From sequence record ON631220.1: 64,000 nucleotides of DNA, one strand, 5' to 3'. The notes below the pieces were generated by a model. The model had not been told where the DNA came from, did no database searches, and saw only the letters and a list, made by a program, of their open reading frames with translations. Both the position numbers and the translations under genes were made by a program. Shown piece after piece: positions 7,379-63,974 of this stretch (its first letter is position 1; every line of letters starts with the position of its first letter).

Positions 7379-7423
7379 GCCCTCCCTTCGGGGAGGGCTA
7401 TTGCACTAAATTTTATTTGAGAT
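7379..7423 (+). repeat. 45-bp terminator+promoter cassette, exact copy of 23049..23093
   Basis: gccctcccttcggggagggctattgcactaaattttatttgagat is identical at both sites. Confidence 0.95.
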
Positions 7424-17155: not shown

Positions 17156-17356
17156 ATGGATCGTCTTGATGAAAGAATCGCATTCAGTGTAAGGTCGTAC
17201 AAAATTTTCAATGCTCTTGCCAATGGCCGAGTTCGAGCATTGATTATTAACTTTAAAGATGGTAAGGGTACGATCATGTCTATTAGTGATGATCGCCGCC
17301 ATGATAAGCATCTCTGGTTCAACTGTGGACTAGTGGACAATCCAAGGATCAAGTAA
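17156..17356 (+). CDS. Hypothetical protein
   Basis: GAGGA SD; TAATG coupling to thyA. Confidence 0.7.
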   Translation: MDRLDERIAFSVRSYKIFNALANGRVRALIINFKDGKGTIMSISDDRRHDKHLWFNCGLVDNPRIK

Positions 17357-18432
17357 TGGAACAATATCTTAATTCAATTCGTTTAGTTAAAGAACTCGGT
17401 GTACATAAAGGTGATCGTACTGGTACTGGCACCCAAAGCATGTTTGGTCAACAAGAACGTTATAGTTTACGTAACAACGTTCTACCCGTAGTAACCACTA
17501 AGAAAATTCATCTTCCATCCGTTATCCATGAATTATTCTGGATGCTTTCTGGTGATACTCGTGTAGATTATTTAATTGAAAATGGTGTACGCATTTGGAA
17601 TGAATGGGTTAAACCAAATACCGCGTTATATGCGCCGATGACTGATGAGGCCGTTCTCAAAGCAGTAACTACCCTCATTGGTGCCCCATTCGTAATGTAC
17701 GTCCATTGCATGAACGATGACTCTACTCCAATCATCGAGACTGTAGTGGAGTTCGAGTCGGGTATGGCCCCAGAGACTATTCAGGCTTTCTGGGATGAAC
17801 ATCCAGTTAACCGTGAGGAAATCCAATACGTCATTGGAGTTAGTGAAAAGTCGTGGAATAGGCTCGCTACTGAAGGATTCGATGAAGCCAAAAATCCTGA
17901 AGGTATTCATACTGAATATAACAAACGGCTGTATCGTGCTTTGACGCATAAAGAACCAGCACGCCTGGTCGGCGGCGATCTAGGTGCTGTTTACGGTAAG
18001 ACTTGGCGTGATCTTGAAGATACTCGTGTGATCCCAAAACACGAGTGGGTTGATTACGAGGCACGTGGCTTTGACTTCGTAGTTGATATTCCAGGTACTT
18101 GCATGGAGAATGATCGGTGTGTTGTTACTAGACGTATCGATCAGATTCAAGACGTGATTAATCAACTTAAGACTAACCCTGATTCTCGTCGGATCATCGT
18201 TTGTGCATGGGCACCACAACTTGTCGATGAACAGTCACTCCCACCGTGCCATAGCTTTTTCCAGTTCTGGACTCGTGAACTGACGTTAGAAGAACGGTAT
18301 GACTGGGCCCAACTTAATGACACCGAAGCTCAACGTATTTTCCTTGAAGGTGCGCAACCGGAAACTGATCACGCACTGTGGGATAAACTTGGTGTTCCTA
18401 AACGTGCATTGAGTTGCCAACTCTACCAGCGT
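17356..18432 (+). CDS. thyA: Thymidylate synthase, exon 1 (spliced product 459 aa)
   Basis: DRTGTGT, IHELFWML, PDSRR, catalytic LPPCH; ends at SCQLYQR. Confidence 0.97.
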
Positions 18433-19522
18433 TAAATACTAGCGCCTTCTAGGAGCAATCCTAGTCGAATAACCTATCTAAACGGGGAAACTCTCTATGA
18501 GACAATCCCGTGCTAAATTGACTACGGTCATAAATGCCTAACGACTATCGAAACCACTCTGAGAAGAGGAAGGGAGTAGAGTAGGACCAAGTGGTCCGAA
18601 AAGGTAGGGGTCTCTTTTTAAGAGATCGTGATATAGTCTGTCCTGCATGGAGACATGCAGCGGTTTACTTAATGACTCCGCCAGATAAGGAGGGTGTTAT
18701 TAATGACGTAGCTTATGTGTATTGCCTATTCACCAAAGAAGGAAAGGTATATGTCGGAAGTGCGCGAGATTTAGTTAAGCGCGTTCAACGACATTTCAGA
18801 GACCTTAGTAATTCCAAGCACCATAACTACCCATTACAACAAGAATACGATAACGGTGAAAGATTCTCGTTAAAGTACTATCGTTGTGAAAGTCGGGAAT
18901 CAGCATTTACACTCGAACAGATGTGGATAACCAAGCATGAAGAAGAAGGTAACCTTCTTAATATTGGTAGACACTCCAAGGGTGGTGATAACTTAACCAG
19001 GCATAACCTCAAAGAACAAATCATCGAGAAGCGGAGTGATACAATACGTATCAGACTTGATGAGATTGGAGCCGAGGCTCGTCAGGAAAAGTATGGTCGA
19101 CTAGGTGAGCAGAATGGGATGTATGGTCGTACTCACACAGAAGAAGTTAAGGTAGCTCTATCCGAGTTACACACGGGTAACACTTACCGTCTTGGCATTA
19201 AAGCTAGTGATGAGACAAGAGCCAGGATGTCGGAGATAGCTTCTCAGAGAACAGGCGAACGTAATCCATTCTACGGTAAAACACATTCCGAAGAAACCAG
19301 AAAAAAGTTGACGGATAACAAACGCGGTATAAAGCCAACTAACTCAAACAAACTTGAAGTGGACGGTGTTGTTTATTTATCCCAGGCCGATGCAGCTAAG
19401 GCTCTCGGAGTATCACAGGGTACAATAACATACCGAATTAACAGCAAGAATCCAAAGTATTCTGGTTATAAAGTCATTTAAGTAAACGGCTCAGGATTAA
19501 CGACCCTGGGTGAACATAAGAG
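18433..19522 (+). mobile_element. Group I self-splicing intron (1090 nt) in thyA
   Basis: P1 GCGU|UA-AAUAC-UA-GCGC with U.G at the 5' splice site; P/Q/R/S-like elements aaacggggaaac, aatcccgtgc, cctaacgactat, gtgatatagtctg; P9 ctgcatg-gaga-catgcag; terminal G19522; removal restores QR|SVD. Confidence 0.93.
18672..19481 (+). CDS. Intron-encoded GIY-YIG homing endonuclease with NUMOD3-like repeats and C-terminal HTH
   Basis: VYCLFTKEGKVYVGSARDLVKRVQRH; NPFYGKTHSEETRKKL; SQADAAKALGVSQGTI; looped out of a stem formed by 18659-18671 and 19479-19490; start codon uncertain. Confidence 0.9.
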   Translation: MTPPDKEGVINDVAYVYCLFTKEGKVYVGSARDLVKRVQRHFRDLSNSKHHNYPLQQEYDNGERFSLKYYRCESRESAFTLEQMWITKHEEEGNLLNIGRHSKGGDNLTRHNLKEQIIEKRSDTIRIRLDEIGAEARQEKYGRLGEQNGMYGRTHTEEVKVALSELHTGNTYRLGIKASDETRARMSEIASQRTGERNPFYGKTHSEETRKKLTDNKRGIKPTNSNKLEVDGVVYLSQADAAKALGVSQGTITYRINSKNPKYSGYKVI

Positions 19523-19825
19523 AGCGTCGATACTTTCTTAGGAAAACCCTTTAATATCACGTTCTACAGTCTGCTGACCCATATGTTAGCTAACCAAATG
19601 AATATGGTAGCTGAAGAGTTTATCTGGACTGGTGGTGATGTACATATTTACTCTAACCACCAAGAACAAACCGATCTTCAATTAACTCGTGAACCGAAGG
19701 TTCTACCTACCATTCGTTTTAAAGAAGAAGCTATTGGTAAAGATATTCGGGAAATTGGTGTAGATGATTTTGTTATCGAGAACTACGAATATCATCCACA
19801 CATTGCTGGCAAAGTTGCTGTCTAA
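19523..19825 (+). CDS. thyA: Thymidylate synthase, exon 2
   Basis: SVDTFLGKPFNITFYSLLTHMLA...GDVHIYSNH...IAGKVAV, in frame with track ORF 19583. Confidence 0.95.
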   Translation, partial: SVDTFLGKPFNITFYSLLTHMLANQMNMVAEEFIWTGGDVHIYSNHQEQTDLQLTREPKVLPTIRFKEEAIGKDIREIGVDDFVIENYEYHPHIAGKVAV

Positions 19826-19832
19826 CATAAAT

Positions 19833-19850
19833 GCCTCCCTTCGGGGAGGC
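19833..19850 (+). terminator. Intrinsic terminator (UUCG)
   Basis: gcctccc-ttcg-gggaggc-tttattt. Confidence 0.85.
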
Positions 19851-19932
19851 TTTATTTCCCTTGGAGAAATTCGATGTTCATGTATCTGGATATCGGTAAA
19901 GAAGAGAAATTTCGAATGATTAAGGTGACCAC

Positions 19933-22575: not shown

Positions 22576-22639
22576 TAAGTCTTTTACAAAGTTACCATAA
22601 AGGCCTCCCTTCGGGGAGGCCTTTATATTGTGTTTTTTT

Positions 22640-23048: not shown

Positions 23049-23102
23049 GCCCTCCCTTCGGGGAGGGCTATTGCACTAAATTTTATTTGAGATATATATT
23101 AC
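23049..23102 (+). promoter_or_regulatory. Terminator + early promoter cassette (first 45 bp = copy of 7379..7423)
   Basis: UUCG hairpin, then TATATTAC at 23095-23102. Confidence 0.9.
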
Positions 23103-25435: not shown

Positions 25436-26092
25436 ATGCTAATGAATGAAATTATCGATATTCTAGAAGGAGGGAAAGAGAATATTCTCTTAACTAACCA
25501 TCTAGGTAATGGCAAATATTCCAATGCGGGTAATGCAATGGCTGCATCATATGCCATTGCGGCACATACTGCTGTTGGTCAATTGCGAGATGGTTCAGGA
25601 AAACCTTACTGGCATCATTTATTACAAGTAGCTGAGATGGCGCAATTATTCGACCTATCTCACGCTGCTTATAAAGCAGCATGGTTACATGATGTAATTG
25701 AGGATACTGCTGTAACTGCTTCTGATCTAACTAAACTATTCTCAATCCCTGTTGTTAATTTAGTAACTGAACTAACAAATGTAACTTACGAAGGTAATCG
25801 TAAAACTAGGATTAGTTTACAACATGAAAGACTTTCTCGCATTTCATGGAGTGGTCAATCTCTTAAGTTACTAGATTCCATTTCAAACATGTGGTCGATT
25901 GTTAATGATAAGCCTGATTTTGCTGAACTGTATCTGACTGAGAAAGCTCAACTAATCAGTAAGTTAAATAATTGTCACCCCGCTATTAAAGATCTGGCTA
26001 TATCTGTTCTCTATGGCAGGTGTACTATGGTTGGTGGGGATGCACTAAAAGAATATAATAAACTATTTTCTGATAATGAAATTGTATGTTAA
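25436..26092 (+). CDS. HD-domain (p)ppGpp hydrolase-like protein (Mesh1/small alarmone hydrolase type)
   Basis: AH-x3-Q-x-R, PYWHHLLQVA, AWLHDVIEDT, VTELT and KLLDSISN motifs. Confidence 0.85.
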   Translation: MLMNEIIDILEGGKENILLTNHLGNGKYSNAGNAMAASYAIAAHTAVGQLRDGSGKPYWHHLLQVAEMAQLFDLSHAAYKAAWLHDVIEDTAVTASDLTKLFSIPVVNLVTELTNVTYEGNRKTRISLQHERLSRISWSGQSLKLLDSISNMWSIVNDKPDFAELYLTEKAQLISKLNNCHPAIKDLAISVLYGRCTMVGGDALKEYNKLFSDNEIVC

Positions 26093-26110: not shown

Positions 26111-26178
26111 ACCCTCCCTTCGGGGAGGGTTTTATTTATCTTTTTTTGTATTTAAACTATTTAAAAAGCTATATTACA
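26111..26178 (+). promoter_or_regulatory. Terminator (UUCG) + early promoter cassette
   Basis: accctccc-ttcg-gggagggt at 26111-26130; TATATTAC at 26170-26177. Confidence 0.85.
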
Positions 26179-36056: not shown

Positions 36057-36118
36057 CGTCATAATGGCCTCCCTTCGGGGAGGCTTTTATATCCTTTTAT
36101 ATAAACAGGTATATTCAA

Positions 36119-48209: not shown

Positions 48210-48330
48210 TATGTAAAGAATACCCAAATCGGGATCTCCCGGACTATCTCCCTTCAGCGTTCCCGTCCGCAAATGAAGGTGCCGCCGAGATCCCACCTAT
48301 TGATAATGCCCTCCCTTCGGGGAGGGCTTT
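48210..48330 (+). ncRNA. Candidate structured small RNA
   Basis: TATG at 48210; nested GC-rich stems 48231-38/48287-94 and 48251-56/48274-79; terminator 48308-48327. Confidence 0.5.
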
Positions 48331-58431: not shown

Positions 58432-58721
58432 TATAGAAGTTCCTTTATTACAATGTAGTATATAACCTTTATTAAATTAGGTTATATACCGGCTATGGAA
58501 AGGCCTCGTCACCTTCCCTTCACCTATATTAAATATCAATAGTGGTTATAAAGAACGAGATACACTCATTGACATAATATAGCCAGGGGTGGCAAACCCC
58601 TGGCACTCAGACACACTCTATAATTAAATCTACCACCGAGTGTATTTAGTGGATAGCTTTAGGATTATCTAGATACAGTAATCCTACATAATATCATCGC
58701 ACTAGTATTTTTATCTTTAGT

Positions 58722-59813: not shown

Positions 59814-59900
59814 TGGCTGGTAAGGTAGGATTCGAACCTACGGTGGGCTTTCGCCAACGGATTAACAGTCCGCTCCCTGCTACCACTCGGGTACTTACCA
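59814..59900 (-). tRNA. tRNA-Asn(GUU), 87 nt, with long variable arm
   Basis: TGGTAAG/CTTACCA acceptor stem, G73, CCA; anticodon GTT; variable arm TGGCGAAAGCCCA. Confidence 0.9.
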
Positions 59901-59909
59901 ATGAAATCG

Positions 59910-59946
59910 TAAAAGTCACTTGCTCTACCGACTGAGCTATCACGGA
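59910..59946 (-). pseudogene. tRNA 5'-half remnant, truncated in the anticodon loop
   Basis: TCCGTGA-TA-GCTC-AGTCGGTA-GAGC-A-AGTGA-CTTTTA; no 3' half follows. Confidence 0.85.
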
Positions 59947-59952
59947 ATTAAA

Positions 59953-60029
59953 TGGCGCGCCCAAGGGGACTCGAACCCCTAACCACCCGCGTGACAGGCG
60001 GGTATTCTAACCAACTGAACTATGAGCGC
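59953..60029 (-). tRNA. tRNA-Asp(GUC)
   Basis: Cloverleaf, anticodon GTC, G73, CCA. Confidence 0.97.
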
Positions 60030-60082
60030 GAACGTATGGACATGACTTCTTACATAGTATTATACAATCAGTAATATTTTTA

Positions 60083-60430
60083 TTATGGTCGGTCAGTCCA
60101 GTGCTTAAAATAATTGTCATCTTTAGGGCTACCATGTTCAGCAAGGATGTTCTTAAGTTCCTCACTAGACAGCTTGACCCTAACCCCTACGGGAATATCC
60201 AGTTCAGGGCACGGTTCAGTTTTACGACTGATAATCAGATTATCAGTCCCATCTTTAAAAATAAAGATGAACTGAGTTTCGCTATCACTGATCTTTTTCT
60301 TAATACATTGCTTTACTTCTGGATGTTGTTTATGAATTTCAATAAACGCATCTGTAAGAGACATGCACATTAATTTTGGACTACAAAATGTGGAATATAC
60401 ACTATACTGAGATTCAGTTAAATTATTCAT
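60083..60430 (-). CDS. Hypothetical protein
   Basis: GGAG SD, between tRNA genes. Confidence 0.75.
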   Translation of the reverse strand: MNNLTESQYSVYSTFCSPKLMCMSLTDAFIEIHKQHPEVKQCIKKKISDSETQFIFIFKDGTDNLIISRKTEPCPELDIPVGVRVKLSSEELKNILAEHGSPKDDNYFKHWTDRP

Positions 60431-60517
60431 ATTTACTCCGTATGCTTGAAATAAAATTCAATGGTATTTAGCACCACCCCTAAGAATCGGATTAATGGTT
60501 GTTTCAATATATTTTTC

Positions 60518-60739
60518 CTAGGGACATTTAAAAATATAAATCGAATGGTTATCTCTGTCGGCTATCTTCAGAGTATTCTCATTTCGAATAGTTTCAAGAG
60601 ACTTGTATTTATGCTCCAGCATATCCAGGTGAGAAATACATTGTCCCCTATTTTCAAATAGGATCTTACTCTCATTAGTCGAAGTGAAACCAAATAATCC
60701 AACTTTGATAGATAATACTAACATTATTACTGTATTCAT
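60518..60739 (-). CDS. Small exported two-cysteine protein, similar pattern to 15756..16013
   Basis: GAGGA SD before MNTVIM; LFENRGQC...IFKCP. Confidence 0.7.
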   Translation of the reverse strand: MNTVIMLVLSIKVGLFGFTSTNESKILFENRGQCISHLDMLEHKYKSLETIRNENTLKIADRDNHSIYIFKCP

Positions 60740-60791
60740 GTTTTCCTCAATGAGACAGTATAAAACCTCCCCCAAGTGGGAGGCTAGTGTA

Positions 60792-60868
60792 TGGTGGGCC
60801 CAGCAGGACTTGAACCTGCGACCAAGCGATTATGAGTCGCCTGCTCTAACCAACTGAGCTATAGGCCC
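60792..60868 (-). tRNA. tRNA with CAU anticodon, most likely tRNA-Ile2 (reads AUA after lysidine modification)
   Basis: GGCGACTCATAATCGCTTGGTCGC arm matches the recalled gammaproteobacterial ileX arm; A73; paired G1-C72, so not an initiator. Confidence 0.9.
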
Positions 60869-60874
60869 TTTTAT

Positions 60875-61168
60875 TTATTCTGGTAGGAATGTTCCGTCTT
60901 TTTGACGGACTAATACACCTGACCATTTGAATGTATTTGTATCACTAACAGGGCACTCTCTAATTACATTGGTTCTAAATGTGCCATGTGGATAGGTTAC
61001 AGTGAATGTAATATGATTATTACAAACATGCAATACAGAAGACTTTGCTTCTGTTAGATAGTGTAAGCCTTGAGCTAATTGAATATTAGTTAATTCAGGG
61101 TCACTAAGAATAGCGTAAAGAGCTGTTCCTATAATTTGATGTTCCCATGATATCCATTTATTATCCAT
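60875..61168 (-). CDS. Hypothetical protein
   Basis: AGGA SD, between tRNA genes. Confidence 0.75.
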   Translation of the reverse strand: MDNKWISWEHQIIGTALYAILSDPELTNIQLAQGLHYLTEAKSSVLHVCNNHITFTVTYPHGTFRTNVIRECPVSDTNTFKWSGVLVRQKDGTFLPE

Positions 61169-61189
61169 CCTATTTACCTATTATTAAAA

Positions 61190-61265
61190 TGGTCGGAGTG
61201 GGGAGACTCGAACTCCCGACATCCTGCTCCCAAAGCAGGTGCGCTACCAACTGCGCTACACTCCG
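61190..61265 (-). tRNA. tRNA-Pro(UGG)
   Basis: C1-G72 cloverleaf, anticodon TGG, CCA. Confidence 0.97.
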
Positions 61266-61274
61266 TATTTAAAT

Positions 61275-61359
61275 TGGTGCCCGAAGTCGGATTCGAACCG
61301 ACAAGACCGTAGCCGGAAGATTTTAAGTCTTCTGTGTTTACCAATTTCACCATTCGGGC
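61275..61359 (-). tRNA. tRNA-Leu(UAA)
   Basis: Class II cloverleaf, anticodon TAA, A73, CCA. Confidence 0.97.
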
Positions 61360-61417: not shown

Positions 61418-61870
61418 TCAACGTGGCCATTGTAAAGAAGTTATCTTATTACCATTAATGTAGACATCGGTCACTTCGCACCAATCATTAATTCTGTGCT
61501 CAATAATTGGCACATCATTTCGGCCAGCCACTCCAATCATATTCCATTTAACATAAATATTCATTAGATCAATTGTTAATTTCTCTTTTATGAGTTTAGG
61601 AGAAATTAATTTAATATTATTAATGTTAAAGAAGTAATTATTAACTTCTTCTAAATATTCATTAGTATTAGTAGTACTAACTTTACCTTCATGTTCAAGT
61701 GAAGATGGTTTATTTTGATTTACAATATTATTCACTAGACTTCTTAAAACGGCGCTTGCCCTACCAGCTTCACGTCTTTTATATTTATCATAGTCTTTTA
61801 CATTAGCTGCAATTTTATCAAATTCTTTTTGGGCATAGATTAACCCTGGTAAAAGTTCATTCTTAATCAT
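61418..61870 (-). CDS. Hypothetical protein
   Basis: AGAG SD; ORF track. Confidence 0.75.
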   Translation of the reverse strand: MIKNELLPGLIYAQKEFDKIAANVKDYDKYKRREAGRASAVLRSLVNNIVNQNKPSSLEHEGKVSTTNTNEYLEEVNNYFFNINNIKLISPKLIKEKLTIDLMNIYVKWNMIGVAGRNDVPIIEHRINDWCEVTDVYINGNKITSLQWPR

Positions 61871-61929
61871 TTTATAATTACTCTATGTTATTTGTACATA
61901 TTTTAACATACTCACGTAAAAACAAAATA

Positions 61930-62081
61930 TAAAGCCTCCCCGAAGGGAGGCGATATATCGTCATTAATGCCCAGCAAAGAGTTTTACTCTCTGGGAGCCA
62001 GTTGGAAGGGGGACTGGCTCCGATTTATTATGACTAATGTAGAAACGAGGGGGAGGGATCATTTCTACATATCATTACATA
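61930..62081 (-). ncRNA. Candidate small RNA with C-rich, anti-SD-like loops
   Basis: TATG motifs upstream; hairpins 62037-62070, 61994-62021 and 61970-61995; UUCG terminator 61934-61951. Confidence 0.6.
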
Positions 62082-62090
62082 CTCAGTAAG

Positions 62091-63974
62091 TTATTCTTCA
62101 ATACCAATGACCGTATTGCGTTCATTGGTGTTCTCTACGGTTGAACCACTTGGGAAGCTACTGACAGATGCTTGCATTAGTTTCAACATGTCGATAGCAA
62201 ATACTCGATATGTAGATTCAACCTTAGCGTCGTCGTACGATGCATGAATGTTAAGAATGGCATTATCGGCCCTTTTAGCCAGCAGATATACATCCTCAAG
62301 AGCATCTTTATCTTTAATAGTGGATAGCTTATGTTTGTAGATATCCCCATTGACAGATAGGTCAGGATACTGGGCTACCCAAGTGTCCGCAATAGTCTTA
62401 GTGTTGTTAGACAGAACGTCAATGATAACGTTAGCTGCTTCCACAATACCGGTAGCATCAAGCAACTTAATCTTAGCACCAGCATTATCTGGCCATTTGG
62501 GTTCTTGGAAGTTTGTCTTTACATTGGGTTTCCATTCAGCCAGAAGAGTAGCGACTTTCTTAGGGTCTTGCCAATCATTCCCTTTGAACAGATTAACCAC
62601 GGGGGCTAGTATCTTACTGTTCTCATCCAGAACTTTCTGGTTGTGACGATCAGCTTTAGCTACAGCATTAGTGATATTGGCTTTTGCGGTCTTAGGATCA
62701 TTAGACGCGAACGTCTCGTAACTCGATACTTTTACTTCGCCGGTTTTAAGCTTTGCTTCTGCCACCCATTTGGCATCACCATAGGTACTTTTCAGTGTAG
62801 CAATAGCTTTCTTCTTTTTATCAAGATTGATCTCAGGGCCAGAGTCGAAGATACTCTTAATGGTGTCGATAAGACCTTCATTTGAGACTTGTATAAAACC
62901 GGGAGTATTAATGATGGACTTCTCTACATACCCGCCACGAATAACTCGATTTATAAAACCATTAAGACCACTACCAGTTTCGGCCATATCTTTCATGATT
63001 TCTATATTTGTTTCACCAGCACTCTGGGCATTGTATAAATAATAAGAACCATCTTTAAATTTTAGTATAATCCAGTCATCTCCAGTTAGATATGAATCAA
63101 TATTACTATCATTCATACTTTGGTATTTAATGAATTCTGGATTAGTACTTAGTACTTCTTCAATAAACTCTTCTAATGCCGCAGAATTATTAATAGCATC
63201 AACAGGTGGAATTTCACCATCAATGGGTTCAGTAGTTGGACCAGTAACAATGGCAGGTAACGGATCCTCCTCTACAATAACAGTTTCTTCCACTGGTAGA
63301 GCACCACATGAAGCATCAATTAGTTTATTAAAACTACTAATGATCTCACCAAGTGCTACAAGAACTGCTGGCTGTTCAACTTGTTCAACTTTAGCAATAC
63401 CAGTTTCTGTAAATTCTTCAGTGATTCGGTTATAAACTTCTACTAGTTGGTTAGTAAGTTCTGCTACTTTTGGCAGAGTCTGCTTAGACAGAGGTTCAAC
63501 TACAGTTGTATCTGCTTCAACAAAAATAGAATCATCTTCTTCTAAACGGCTAGTATTAGCTGAGCCAGCTGTGAAGTTATAAGGCATATCTTGAATTACT
63601 TCATTAATTTCAGATGCCTCCATATCTTCATTTAGACGACCACTATAAGTACGCATCATACCTTCTGCTTCTTTAATAGTGGAATGCGCTAAGCGTCCCC
63701 AATCACCACGCATAATACCGCGCTCGGTAAGACCGCGTGCAGCTGAACCAAGATCAATAGGTTCTTCAATAAATGATTGTTCTTCAACCCACTCTTCATT
63801 ACTGTAACATTCTTTTAGAATGGTTTTAAATTTAGTACTAAAGGGTTGTAGAATCTTTTTATCTACTTGTTCAACATTTGTTTTAAAGTGTTCTAGACTT
63901 GGTGTAGCTTTTGAAGATACTTTTTCAGTACCGCTATATAGCGTACGGTTTAGGAAGTTTAGCATTTTATTCAT
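62091..63974 (-). CDS. Putative internal head protein with KTSC-like module and S-x-E/G maturation site
   Basis: 627 aa; acidic N-terminal half; DSNIDSY...LKFKDGSYYLY...GSGLNGFINR; VSNE|GLIDTIKSIF. Confidence 0.75.
   Translation of the reverse strand: MNKMLNFLNRTLYSGTEKVSSKATPSLEHFKTNVEQVDKKILQPFSTKFKTILKECYSNEEWVEEQSFIEEPIDLGSAARGLTERGIMRGDWGRLAHSTIKEAEGMMRTYSGRLNEDMEASEINEVIQDMPYNFTAGSANTSRLEEDDSIFVEADTTVVEPLSKQTLPKVAELTNQLVEVYNRITEEFTETGIAKVEQVEQPAVLVALGEIISSFNKLIDASCGALPVEETVIVEEDPLPAIVTGPTTEPIDGEIPPVDAINNSAALEEFIEEVLSTNPEFIKYQSMNDSNIDSYLTGDDWIILKFKDGSYYLYNAQSAGETNIEIMKDMAETGSGLNGFINRVIRGGYVEKSIINTPGFIQVSNEGLIDTIKSIFDSGPEINLDKKKKAIATLKSTYGDAKWVAEAKLKTGEVKVSSYETFASNDPKTAKANITNAVAKADRHNQKVLDENSKILAPVVNLFKGNDWQDPKKVATLLAEWKPNVKTNFQEPKWPDNAGAKIKLLDATGIVEAANVIIDVLSNNTKTIADTWVAQYPDLSVNGDIYKHKLSTIKDKDALEDVYLLAKRADNAILNIHASYDDAKVESTYRVFAIDMLKLMQASVSSFPSGSTVENTNERNTVIGIEE

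Follow-up and report, generated by a model that had tools for sequence, protein, structure and literature searches.

The stretch of DNA analysed here, 64,000 nucleotides from record ON631220.1 of Pseudomonas phage OMKO1, a Phikzvirus (the whole stretch is called the window below), contains on its minus strand a 220-nt gap separating the homologues of the phiKZ genes PHIKZ303 and PHIKZ302 (gp303 and gp302). Within this gap lies a short RNA whose parts, as proposed in an original prediction made from the letters alone, are TATG motifs followed by three hairpins and a UUCG terminator; all of these are present on the minus strand (61926-62081; Table 1). RNAs of the same family were found in three genera of P. 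aeruginosa jumbo phages, Phikzvirus, Pawinskivirus and Miltoncavirus (phage PhiPA3), in each directly after the stop codon of a gp303-like gene. Since the RNA is conserved in these three genera, its stems covary and one of its C-rich loops is fixed, it is very probably a functional, structured noncoding RNA (ncRNA).

Table 1. Features of the RNA locus and its surroundings in the OMKO1 window.
Feature	Position	Strand	Remarks
gp303 (PHIKZ303 homologue)	62091..63974	-	627-aa virion/head protein, upstream of the RNA
AACTTAC box	62086..62092	-	Overlaps the gp303 stop codon; TTAC 18-21 nt before the predicted start
Two TATG motifs	62081-62078 and 62071-62068	-	From sequence; consensus of the non-virion RNA polymerase (nvRNAP)
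Noncoding RNA	61926..62068	-	~141-143 nt from transcription start to start of T tract; ends predicted for OMKO1
H1	62039..62068	-	10-bp stem inside the RNA; 10-nt loop UCCCUCCCCC at 62058-62049; from minimum free energy (MFE) fold and unpaired probabilities
Closing helix	62034-62030 with 61964-61960 (span 61960..62034)	-	5 bp, encloses H2 and H3; MFE folds
H2	61994..62021	-	9-bp stem GGAGCCAGU / ACUGGCUCC (62021-62013, 62002-61994)
H3	61975..61993	-	8-bp stem, small A-rich loop
Intrinsic terminator	61918..61959	-	Core GCCUCCC-UUCG-GGGAGGC at 61951-61934, AU-rich lower stem, T tract; terminator scan
Two further TATG motifs	61897..61910	-	In the spacer between terminator and gp302 start codon; from sequence
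gp302 (PHIKZ302 homologue)	61418..61870	-	150 aa, downstream of the RNA, before the tRNA cluster
tRNA cluster	59814..61359	-	Five tRNAs (Leu-UAA, Pro-UGG, Met, Asp, Asn) with small genes interspersed

In phiKZ, the late promoters used by nvRNAP conform to the consensus TATG and initiate at its G (Yakunina 2015, PMC4666361). The second of the two TATG motifs ahead of the hairpins is present in all relatives, and the first is absent from phiKZ. Because phiKZ makes a 141-nt RNA without the first motif, we take the second as the start, the G at 62068 being the predicted transcription start site (TSS). From this G to the T tract the distance is 141-143 nt in both OMKO1 and phiKZ, and this spacing together with the start-at-G consensus places the OMKO1 RNA at 62068 to ~61926-61928. 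The AACTTAC box further upstream, a putative promoter element, resembles the AAanTTACc motif that lies near -24 in phiKZ middle promoters (PMC4666361); Pawinskivirus and PhiPA3 have kept the box, and in phiKZ a related one, AAAACTACC, lies ~4 nt further upstream. With a box of this AAnnTTAC middle-promoter type upstream of the TATG, the designation of the RNA as late, which had been part of the prediction, is not established.

The corresponding phiKZ transcript has been mapped by ONT-cappable-seq (Putzeys 2024, Microlife, PMC10914365). TU237 is there an intergenic RNA of 141 nt that starts at a TSS of its own and stops, upstream of PHIKZ302, at terminator T131. Northern blotting bore out both its size and its abundance, and a longer species arising by read-through was seen as well. 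The RNA belongs to a set of 17 '5'UTR-derived ncRNA candidates' and is described as a 5' untranslated region (UTR) 'tightly controlled by conditional termination'; the main text discusses no function, fold, motif, cross-genus family, covariation or C-rich loops of this RNA. In the later literature we found no paper characterising it. TU237 has the same locus, strand and neighbours as the OMKO1 RNA, its reported length matches the TATG-to-terminator spacing, and the two RNAs are 97.2% identical over 143 nt. On sequence, then, the OMKO1 RNA is the orthologue of TU237, the 5'UTR-PHIKZ302 ncRNA candidate; a discrete, abundant transcript has been shown in phiKZ, whereas the OMKO1 RNA is known here from its sequence. 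The statement that no description existed consequently does not hold, as TU237 and T131 had been mapped and blotted (PMC10914365). The transcript itself is already published; what is new here is the cross-genus family, the shared fold, the compensatory changes and the invariance of a loop.

The prediction of a discrete noncoding RNA is borne out by the TATG promoter, the intrinsic terminator, the lack of a conserved open reading frame (ORF) and the phiKZ northern blot (PMC10914365). A 32-aa sense ORF (61964-62062) and a 40-aa antisense ORF (61967-62089) were considered as coding candidates and rejected: phiKZ lacks both, the other genera have other frames, and no ORF on either strand is common to all homologues. 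In being an independent transcript, with its own TSS in phiKZ (PMC10914365), and in lacking a conserved ORF, the RNA resembles base-pairing small RNAs (sRNAs) that act in trans. Another proposal was that the head-protein gene might supply the RNA from its 3' UTR. Because a separate TSS is reported (PMC10914365), it is not merely the gp303 3' UTR, though read-through from gp303 may also end at the terminator.

In the MFE fold a 5'-terminal hairpin, H1, is followed by a helix closing round H2 and H3, which makes a three-way junction, and then by the terminator. Folding of the 196-nt stretch yields -67 kcal/mol, whereas dinucleotide shuffles average -38.6 +/- 4.3 (z = -6.65), and none of 200 shuffles was as good. 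The H1 stem and its C-rich loop are as predicted, except that the stem is longer by three pairs (U.G, G-C and A-U; arms at 62070-62059 and 62048-62037) and the loop has 10 nt, not 16; the extension is supported by a double change from G-C to A-U in phages phiKZ, U5 and 124.01. It follows that the G and A of a GAUC formerly read as part of the loop are base-paired. The H2 loop is CCCCCUUCCA (62012-62003). Both loops are 10 nt long, C/U-rich and unpaired with a probability of ~0.9, so that, as had been proposed, they are exposed and predicted to be able to pair with sequences like the Shine-Dalgarno (SD) element. H1 and H2, which lie side by side, are the only hairpins in the window (16.5% C) that combine stems of at least 8 bp with C-rich, G-poor loops. 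A weak 7-bp hairpin with the loop CTTTCCCTCCTTCT on the minus strand at 25458-25485, antisense to an annotated coding sequence (25436-26092, plus strand), is probably due to chance. The terminator scan also flagged H2 as a plus-strand terminator, which we reject, there being no convergent plus-strand gene at that position.

The terminator is formed in every MFE fold and in the ensemble, and its 3' tail is an interrupted UUUAUAUUUU. Its stem-loop, CCTCCC-TTCG-GGGAGG, occurs eight times in the 64 kb: at 7381-7396, 19833-19855, 22603-22637, 23051-23066, 26113-26128, 36067-36087 and 48310-48325, all on the plus strand, and at 61951-61934 on the minus strand. Because the same stem recurs at the seven other sites, the terminator is the stock terminator of the phage and not specific to the RNA. 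Of the perfect complements that loop 1 has in the window, the most frequent is the G-rich 3' arm of this stock terminator.

Every Phikzvirus of the phage collection has the intergenic region, and among these phages the RNA is 97-100% identical, against 55-95% for the flanking genes and 87-93% for the spacer behind the terminator. In Pawinskivirus-type phages (PS119XW, phiLBG22, PA1C and BRkr) the 5' half is recognisable at ~72% identity, and the PhiPA3 homologue was located by synteny. The gp303-like proteins of the three genera vary in length (233-647 aa), with no more than 27-36% identity between them. The genes on the 3' side differ as well: gp302 and tRNAs in Phikzvirus, two small genes in PhiPA3 and, in Pawinskivirus, directly tRNA-Leu, with the RNA terminator ~38 nt upstream of it and no gene between. 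When nine distinct sequences were folded independently, all gave the same architecture, with the loops unpaired in nine of nine MFE folds. The Pawinskivirus RNA is longer (~179 nt, against an expected ~143 nt in OMKO1 and ~158 nt in PhiPA3), carries two extra single-stranded CU-rich tracts and has a closing helix of 9-10 bp, in which PS119XW and PA1C differ by a C-G to U-A change.

Covariation of the stems, with C/U-rich loops kept in the relatives, had been named as a check on the prediction, and such changes are seen in H1, H2 and H3. All cells of H2 are paired (100%); its pair 8, otherwise G-C, is C-G in PhiPA3, while for pair 9 U-A, U.G and C-G all occur. In H3 90.6% of cells are paired, and one pair is A-U, G-C or U-A in the three genera. 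In the gap-free alignment of H2-H3, 95.6% of cells pair, compared with 33-53% when the partners are slid, and three pairs have changed on both sides; the covariation score of 0.304, from four distinct rows in three clades, compares with 0.163 in shuffles and was reached by 3 of 500 of them. MAFFT fails to align H1 structurally between genera, and its pairs were for that reason taken from the separate folds, where the compensatory changes are G-C to A-U (OMKO1 versus phiKZ, U5 and 124.01) and C-G to U-A (PS119XW versus PA1C). Taken together, the covariation evidence is supportive, not conclusive. All three genera share the core of the H2 loop, CCCUUCCA (8 nt), without any change. For H1 the loops are UCCCUCCCCC (OMKO1), UCCUUCCCCC (phiKZ), UCACUCCU (Pawinskivirus) and CCUACUCCU (PhiPA3), which retain CUCC or, in phiKZ, CUUCC.

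A covariance model of H2-H3 (R1) scored 70-74 bits at orthologous sites only, and neither this model nor a hairpin scan revealed a paralogue in the window. Phabio, Viktualia and 201phi2-1, which infect other Pseudomonas hosts, have unrelated sequence after the gp303 homologue, and the model had no match in those loci. Among the relatives found, the family is thus confined to phages of one host species, P. aeruginosa. A pattern scan of IMG/VR returned PA7 and PhiPA3 alone. The single match among JGI metagenomes, inside GC-rich coding sequence with no tRNAs nearby, was set aside as chance. A host origin finds no support in GTDB, where the H2 pattern is missing from all species genomes save two unrelated metagenome-assembled genomes. 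Directly after the gp303 homologue, 201phi2-1 (L016:4790-4870) and Viktualia (L015:3945-4035) carry another short unit, near-identical in the two, that consists of a TATG, an AU-rich hairpin and a ACCCACAGC...GTTGTGGGT terminator and has no C-rich loops. In PhiPA3, tRNA-Leu (L013:5810-5975) comes after a TATGTAGAG start motif of its own and a leader of ~150 nt that bears no relation to the RNA next to gp303.

No Rfam family matched near its threshold, and no cis-regulatory family scored above threshold. The 'cuckoo' sRNAs of alphaproteobacteria and RsaE use C-rich motifs to pair with SD regions. Like the OMKO1 RNA, the cuckoo sRNAs ar14, ar15 and ar35 (RF02344 and relatives) consist of at least two hairpins with C/U-rich, anti-SD-like loops and then a terminator. 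The likeness to this type that had been claimed is real in so far as ar14 has the most similar architecture in Rfam and cmscan aligns both OMKO1 loops to the CCUCCUCCC loops of ar14. The score falls far below threshold, however (19.9 bits and E = 0.056 for 201 nt, where the gathering score is 58.8), and the loop motifs of the phage RNA (CCCUCCCCC and CCCUUCCA) differ from the CCUCCUCCC of ar14, which is found in neither UCCCUCCCCC nor CCCCCUUCCA. Given its three-way junction and its phage origin, the RNA is an analogue of ar14, not a member of the family. With the RsaE/RoxS and RNAIII-type sRNAs of Firmicutes it has exposed C-rich motifs in common, a functional analogy drawn from general knowledge; these differ in architecture, taxon and motif, and gave no Rfam match at E-values up to 10 in searches with 1.2 kb and 201 nt. 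Also comparable are the phiKZ sRNA upstream of gp182 (sRNA005 of 201phi2-1) and 3'UTR_PHIKZ298 of phiKZ, which are likewise short, abundant, structured and syntenic, with a promoter and then a close terminator, but which have unrelated sequences and no reported C-rich loops. At ~58590-58700 on the minus strand the window contains a homologue of the PHIKZ298-PHIKZ297 ncRNA of phiKZ published in a Grad-seq study; the homologue follows a TATGTAG motif and has a GC-rich hairpin at its end.

The gp302 homologue downstream has no Pfam domain, and its sole PHROG match is a family of unknown function. The gene is reached by read-through of the terminator, as the full-length read-through transcript described for phiKZ indicates (PMC10914365), and the TATG pair in the spacer is possibly a separate, putative gp302 promoter; the AAAATATGTA stretch of this spacer is kept across Phikzviruses. 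In a transposon study of phiKZ (bioRxiv, PMC12676376), orf184-304 form a dispensable accessory region, gp303 is non-essential, and an orf302::Tn mutant gave no plaques on the environmental P. aeruginosa strain Env201, with the caveat that the insertions may have polar effects. On the strength of this dispensability and of the orf302::Tn phenotype (PMC12676376), the RNA heads an accessory unit that may have an anti-host-defence role. In phages of the phiKZ lineage (phiKZ, fnug, PaZh_1 and others) the match to OMKO1 begins at the RNA promoter and extends downstream, with a mosaic breakpoint at ~62082-62091 and upstream, and the 3' end of their gp303 is too diverged for blastn; as judged by this comparison, the RNA is situated on a recombination boundary. 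Elsewhere in the window the record splits thymidylate synthase into thyA_1 (17356-18435) and thyA_2 (19583-19825; plus strand, region 17356-19825), and an 890-nt ORF between them (18591-19481) suggests an intervening element in the gene.

How might such an RNA act? We tentatively favour a trans-acting RNA that pairs through its loops, a plausible reading to which we give somewhat less than even weight and in which the action in trans, the seeds and the nature of the targets are all conjectural. Non-virion RNA polymerase would start at the G of the conserved TATG (62068) and transcribe ~141 nt, mostly stopping at the stock terminator, with a minority of transcripts continuing into gp302 and the tRNA cluster. 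The free RNA would then act through its exposed loops, above all the CCCUUCCA of H2, together with the CUCC/CUUCC core of H1, as seeds for G-rich, SD-like sequences (GGA, GGAG or GGAAGG) in mRNAs or other RNAs. The outcome, on the model of RsaE and the cuckoo sRNAs, would be either that ribosome binding sites are masked or that a G-rich partner is sponged. The H2 core, unpaired with a probability of ~0.9 and present in three genera, is a conserved single-stranded seed of the kind that this mechanism calls for.

We examined pairing of the loops with 104 annotated OMKO1 start regions, using for comparison the 16S tail string quoted in the original prediction. In 77-86% of the 104 regions the best duplex of a loop has its centre at the SD position, the mean energy being -4.2 to -4.8 kcal/mol (-30..+10); in shorter regions (-22..+3) the mean is -4.0 to -4.4 kcal/mol, compared with -2.3 to -2.7 for random windows. 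Random C/U-rich decamers, however, agree with the quoted 16S tail in their choice of SD site as often as the loops do (0.63, versus 0.59-0.65 for the loops), and they correlate to a similar degree (0.52 +/- 0.14 versus 0.32-0.63). Because random decamers pick the same sites as often, the anti-SD likeness of the loops is a matter of composition rather than a specific imitation of the 16S 3' end.

Several observations weigh against action of the RNA in trans on SD sequences. Pairing with SD sites is generic to any C/U-rich decamer and therefore does not single out the mechanism. Duplexes of -8 kcal/mol are attained in just 5-10% of the phage start regions and in ~4% of controls, and the phage SDs are mostly GGA, AGGA, AAGG or GGAA, with GGAG in 12 and GGAGG in 2 of the 104. 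Perfect loop complements of at least 7 nt occur in the window only in terminator 3' arms and at scattered genic or intergenic sites, none of them just upstream of a credible start codon. Loop 1 varies between genera, the covariation statistics are weak, since they come from just four to nine distinct sequences in three clades, and the conserved loops would equally fit recognition by a protein. The 3' tail (UUUAUA...), moreover, is a poor U tail of the Hfq type. One candidate target, a run of G-rich sequence (~58522-58495) within the gp297 homologue's 5' UTR, was rejected, its match of only 6-7 nt being at the level of chance.

An unlikely alternative, though one with several points in its favour, is that the RNA is a cis-acting leader in which conditional, premature termination doses gp302 and the tRNA cluster, the short RNA being a by-product. 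This would agree with the wording 'conditional termination' and with the full-length read-through transcript reported for phiKZ (PMC10914365), and also with Pawinskivirus, where no gene intervenes between terminator and tRNA-Leu. The C-rich loops are near-copies of the 5' arm of the terminator and could in principle compete for its G-rich 3' arm, and RNAalifold proposes four loop-terminator pairs in all nine sequences. Compensatory changes are absent from these pairs, however; any change in them is one-sided. As they also stem from a misalignment of H1, we regard the pairs between loop 1 and the terminator as an artefact. The G-poor RNA offers no alternative, antiterminator pairing with the terminator 5' arm, the terminator forms in all MFE folds and in the ensemble, and mutually exclusive terminator and antiterminator structures, as in a riboswitch or attenuator leader, were not found. 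In addition, Phikzviruses have the extra TATG motifs between terminator and gp302, the PhiPA3 RNA precedes other genes while the tRNA-Leu of that phage has a TATG leader of its own, and a plain attenuator needs no strict conservation of its loops.

The persistence of the loop sequence while the stems covary could instead reflect protein binding, and by analogy the RNA might be a decoy or scaffold whose exposed C/U-rich motifs are sites for a host or phage RNA-binding protein that is titrated or recruited. RsmY/Z and CrcZ titrate their proteins in this manner. Each molecule would offer several exposed motifs, namely two loops in Phikzvirus and two further CU-rich tracts in Pawinskivirus, and the restriction of the family to phages of one host species fits the idea, as does the high abundance of the RNA in phiKZ (PMC10914365). 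The loops, however, contain neither the GGA nor the A-rich motifs of known Pseudomonas sponges. We know of no bacterial or phage protein with specificity for CCUCC or CUUCC, which also counts against a decoy of this type, and we consider it improbable.

That the RNA is a passive module at the 3' end of the gp303 mRNA, in which hairpins and terminator stabilise or insulate the message with no function in trans, we regard as very unlikely. It always stands immediately after a gp303-like gene, its terminator is generic, and the different short TATG-to-terminator unit of 201phi2-1 and Viktualia occupies the same position. Against this stand the separate TSS and the abundant, discrete 141-nt species of phiKZ (PMC10914365), and the invariant 8-nt loop core and the junction, which persist where the adjacent intergenic sequence can no longer be aligned; stabilising hairpins need no fixed loop sequence.

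Finally, it is scarcely credible that loop 1 is a true mimic of the 3' tail of 16S rRNA and titrates a factor recognising that tail (a nuclease, modification enzyme or initiation factor). In favour of such mimicry, the OMKO1 loop with its closing bases (GAUCCCUCC) and the Pawinskivirus loop (UCACUCCU) are each one indel from the quoted tail, and the RNA lies in the accessory region beside gp302, a candidate defence inhibitor. The specific likeness originally claimed does not hold, however: GAUC has its G and A in base pairs, with A-U in phiKZ at the position of the G-C pair, and phiKZ loop 1 has CCUUCC in place of CCUCC. The part of the tail that is matched differs among the three genera, with no conserved register, the strictly conserved H2 loop CCCUUCCA is not tail-like, and random C/U-rich decamers equal the loops on SD sites. 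In sum, the observation behind the original prediction is confirmed and its interpretation partly supported, while 16S mimicry and silencing through SD sequences are unproven.

Nucleus-forming phages like phiKZ are candidates for therapy and models of host take-over, and we know of no function for any of the ~17 candidate ncRNAs of phiKZ. One distinctly doubtful extension of trans action is a silencer or decoy directed at the host, in the accessory, anti-defence arm of the genome: its loops would mask mainly the strong, G-rich SDs of host transcripts, which are GC-rich, or sponge a target in the host, either a G-rich RNA or a component of its defences, and the AT-rich phage messages, with SDs mostly of the AGGA/GGAA type, would largely escape. 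If this were true, the RNA would contribute to the shift from host to phage mRNA translation seen in Grad-seq. The invariant CCCUUCCA provides a concrete seed for target searches. If the RNA is only a leader, it defines the dosing of the gp302/tRNA accessory operon; if its target is a host factor or the start of translation, it would join the few examples of strictly lytic phages that exert control through RNA.

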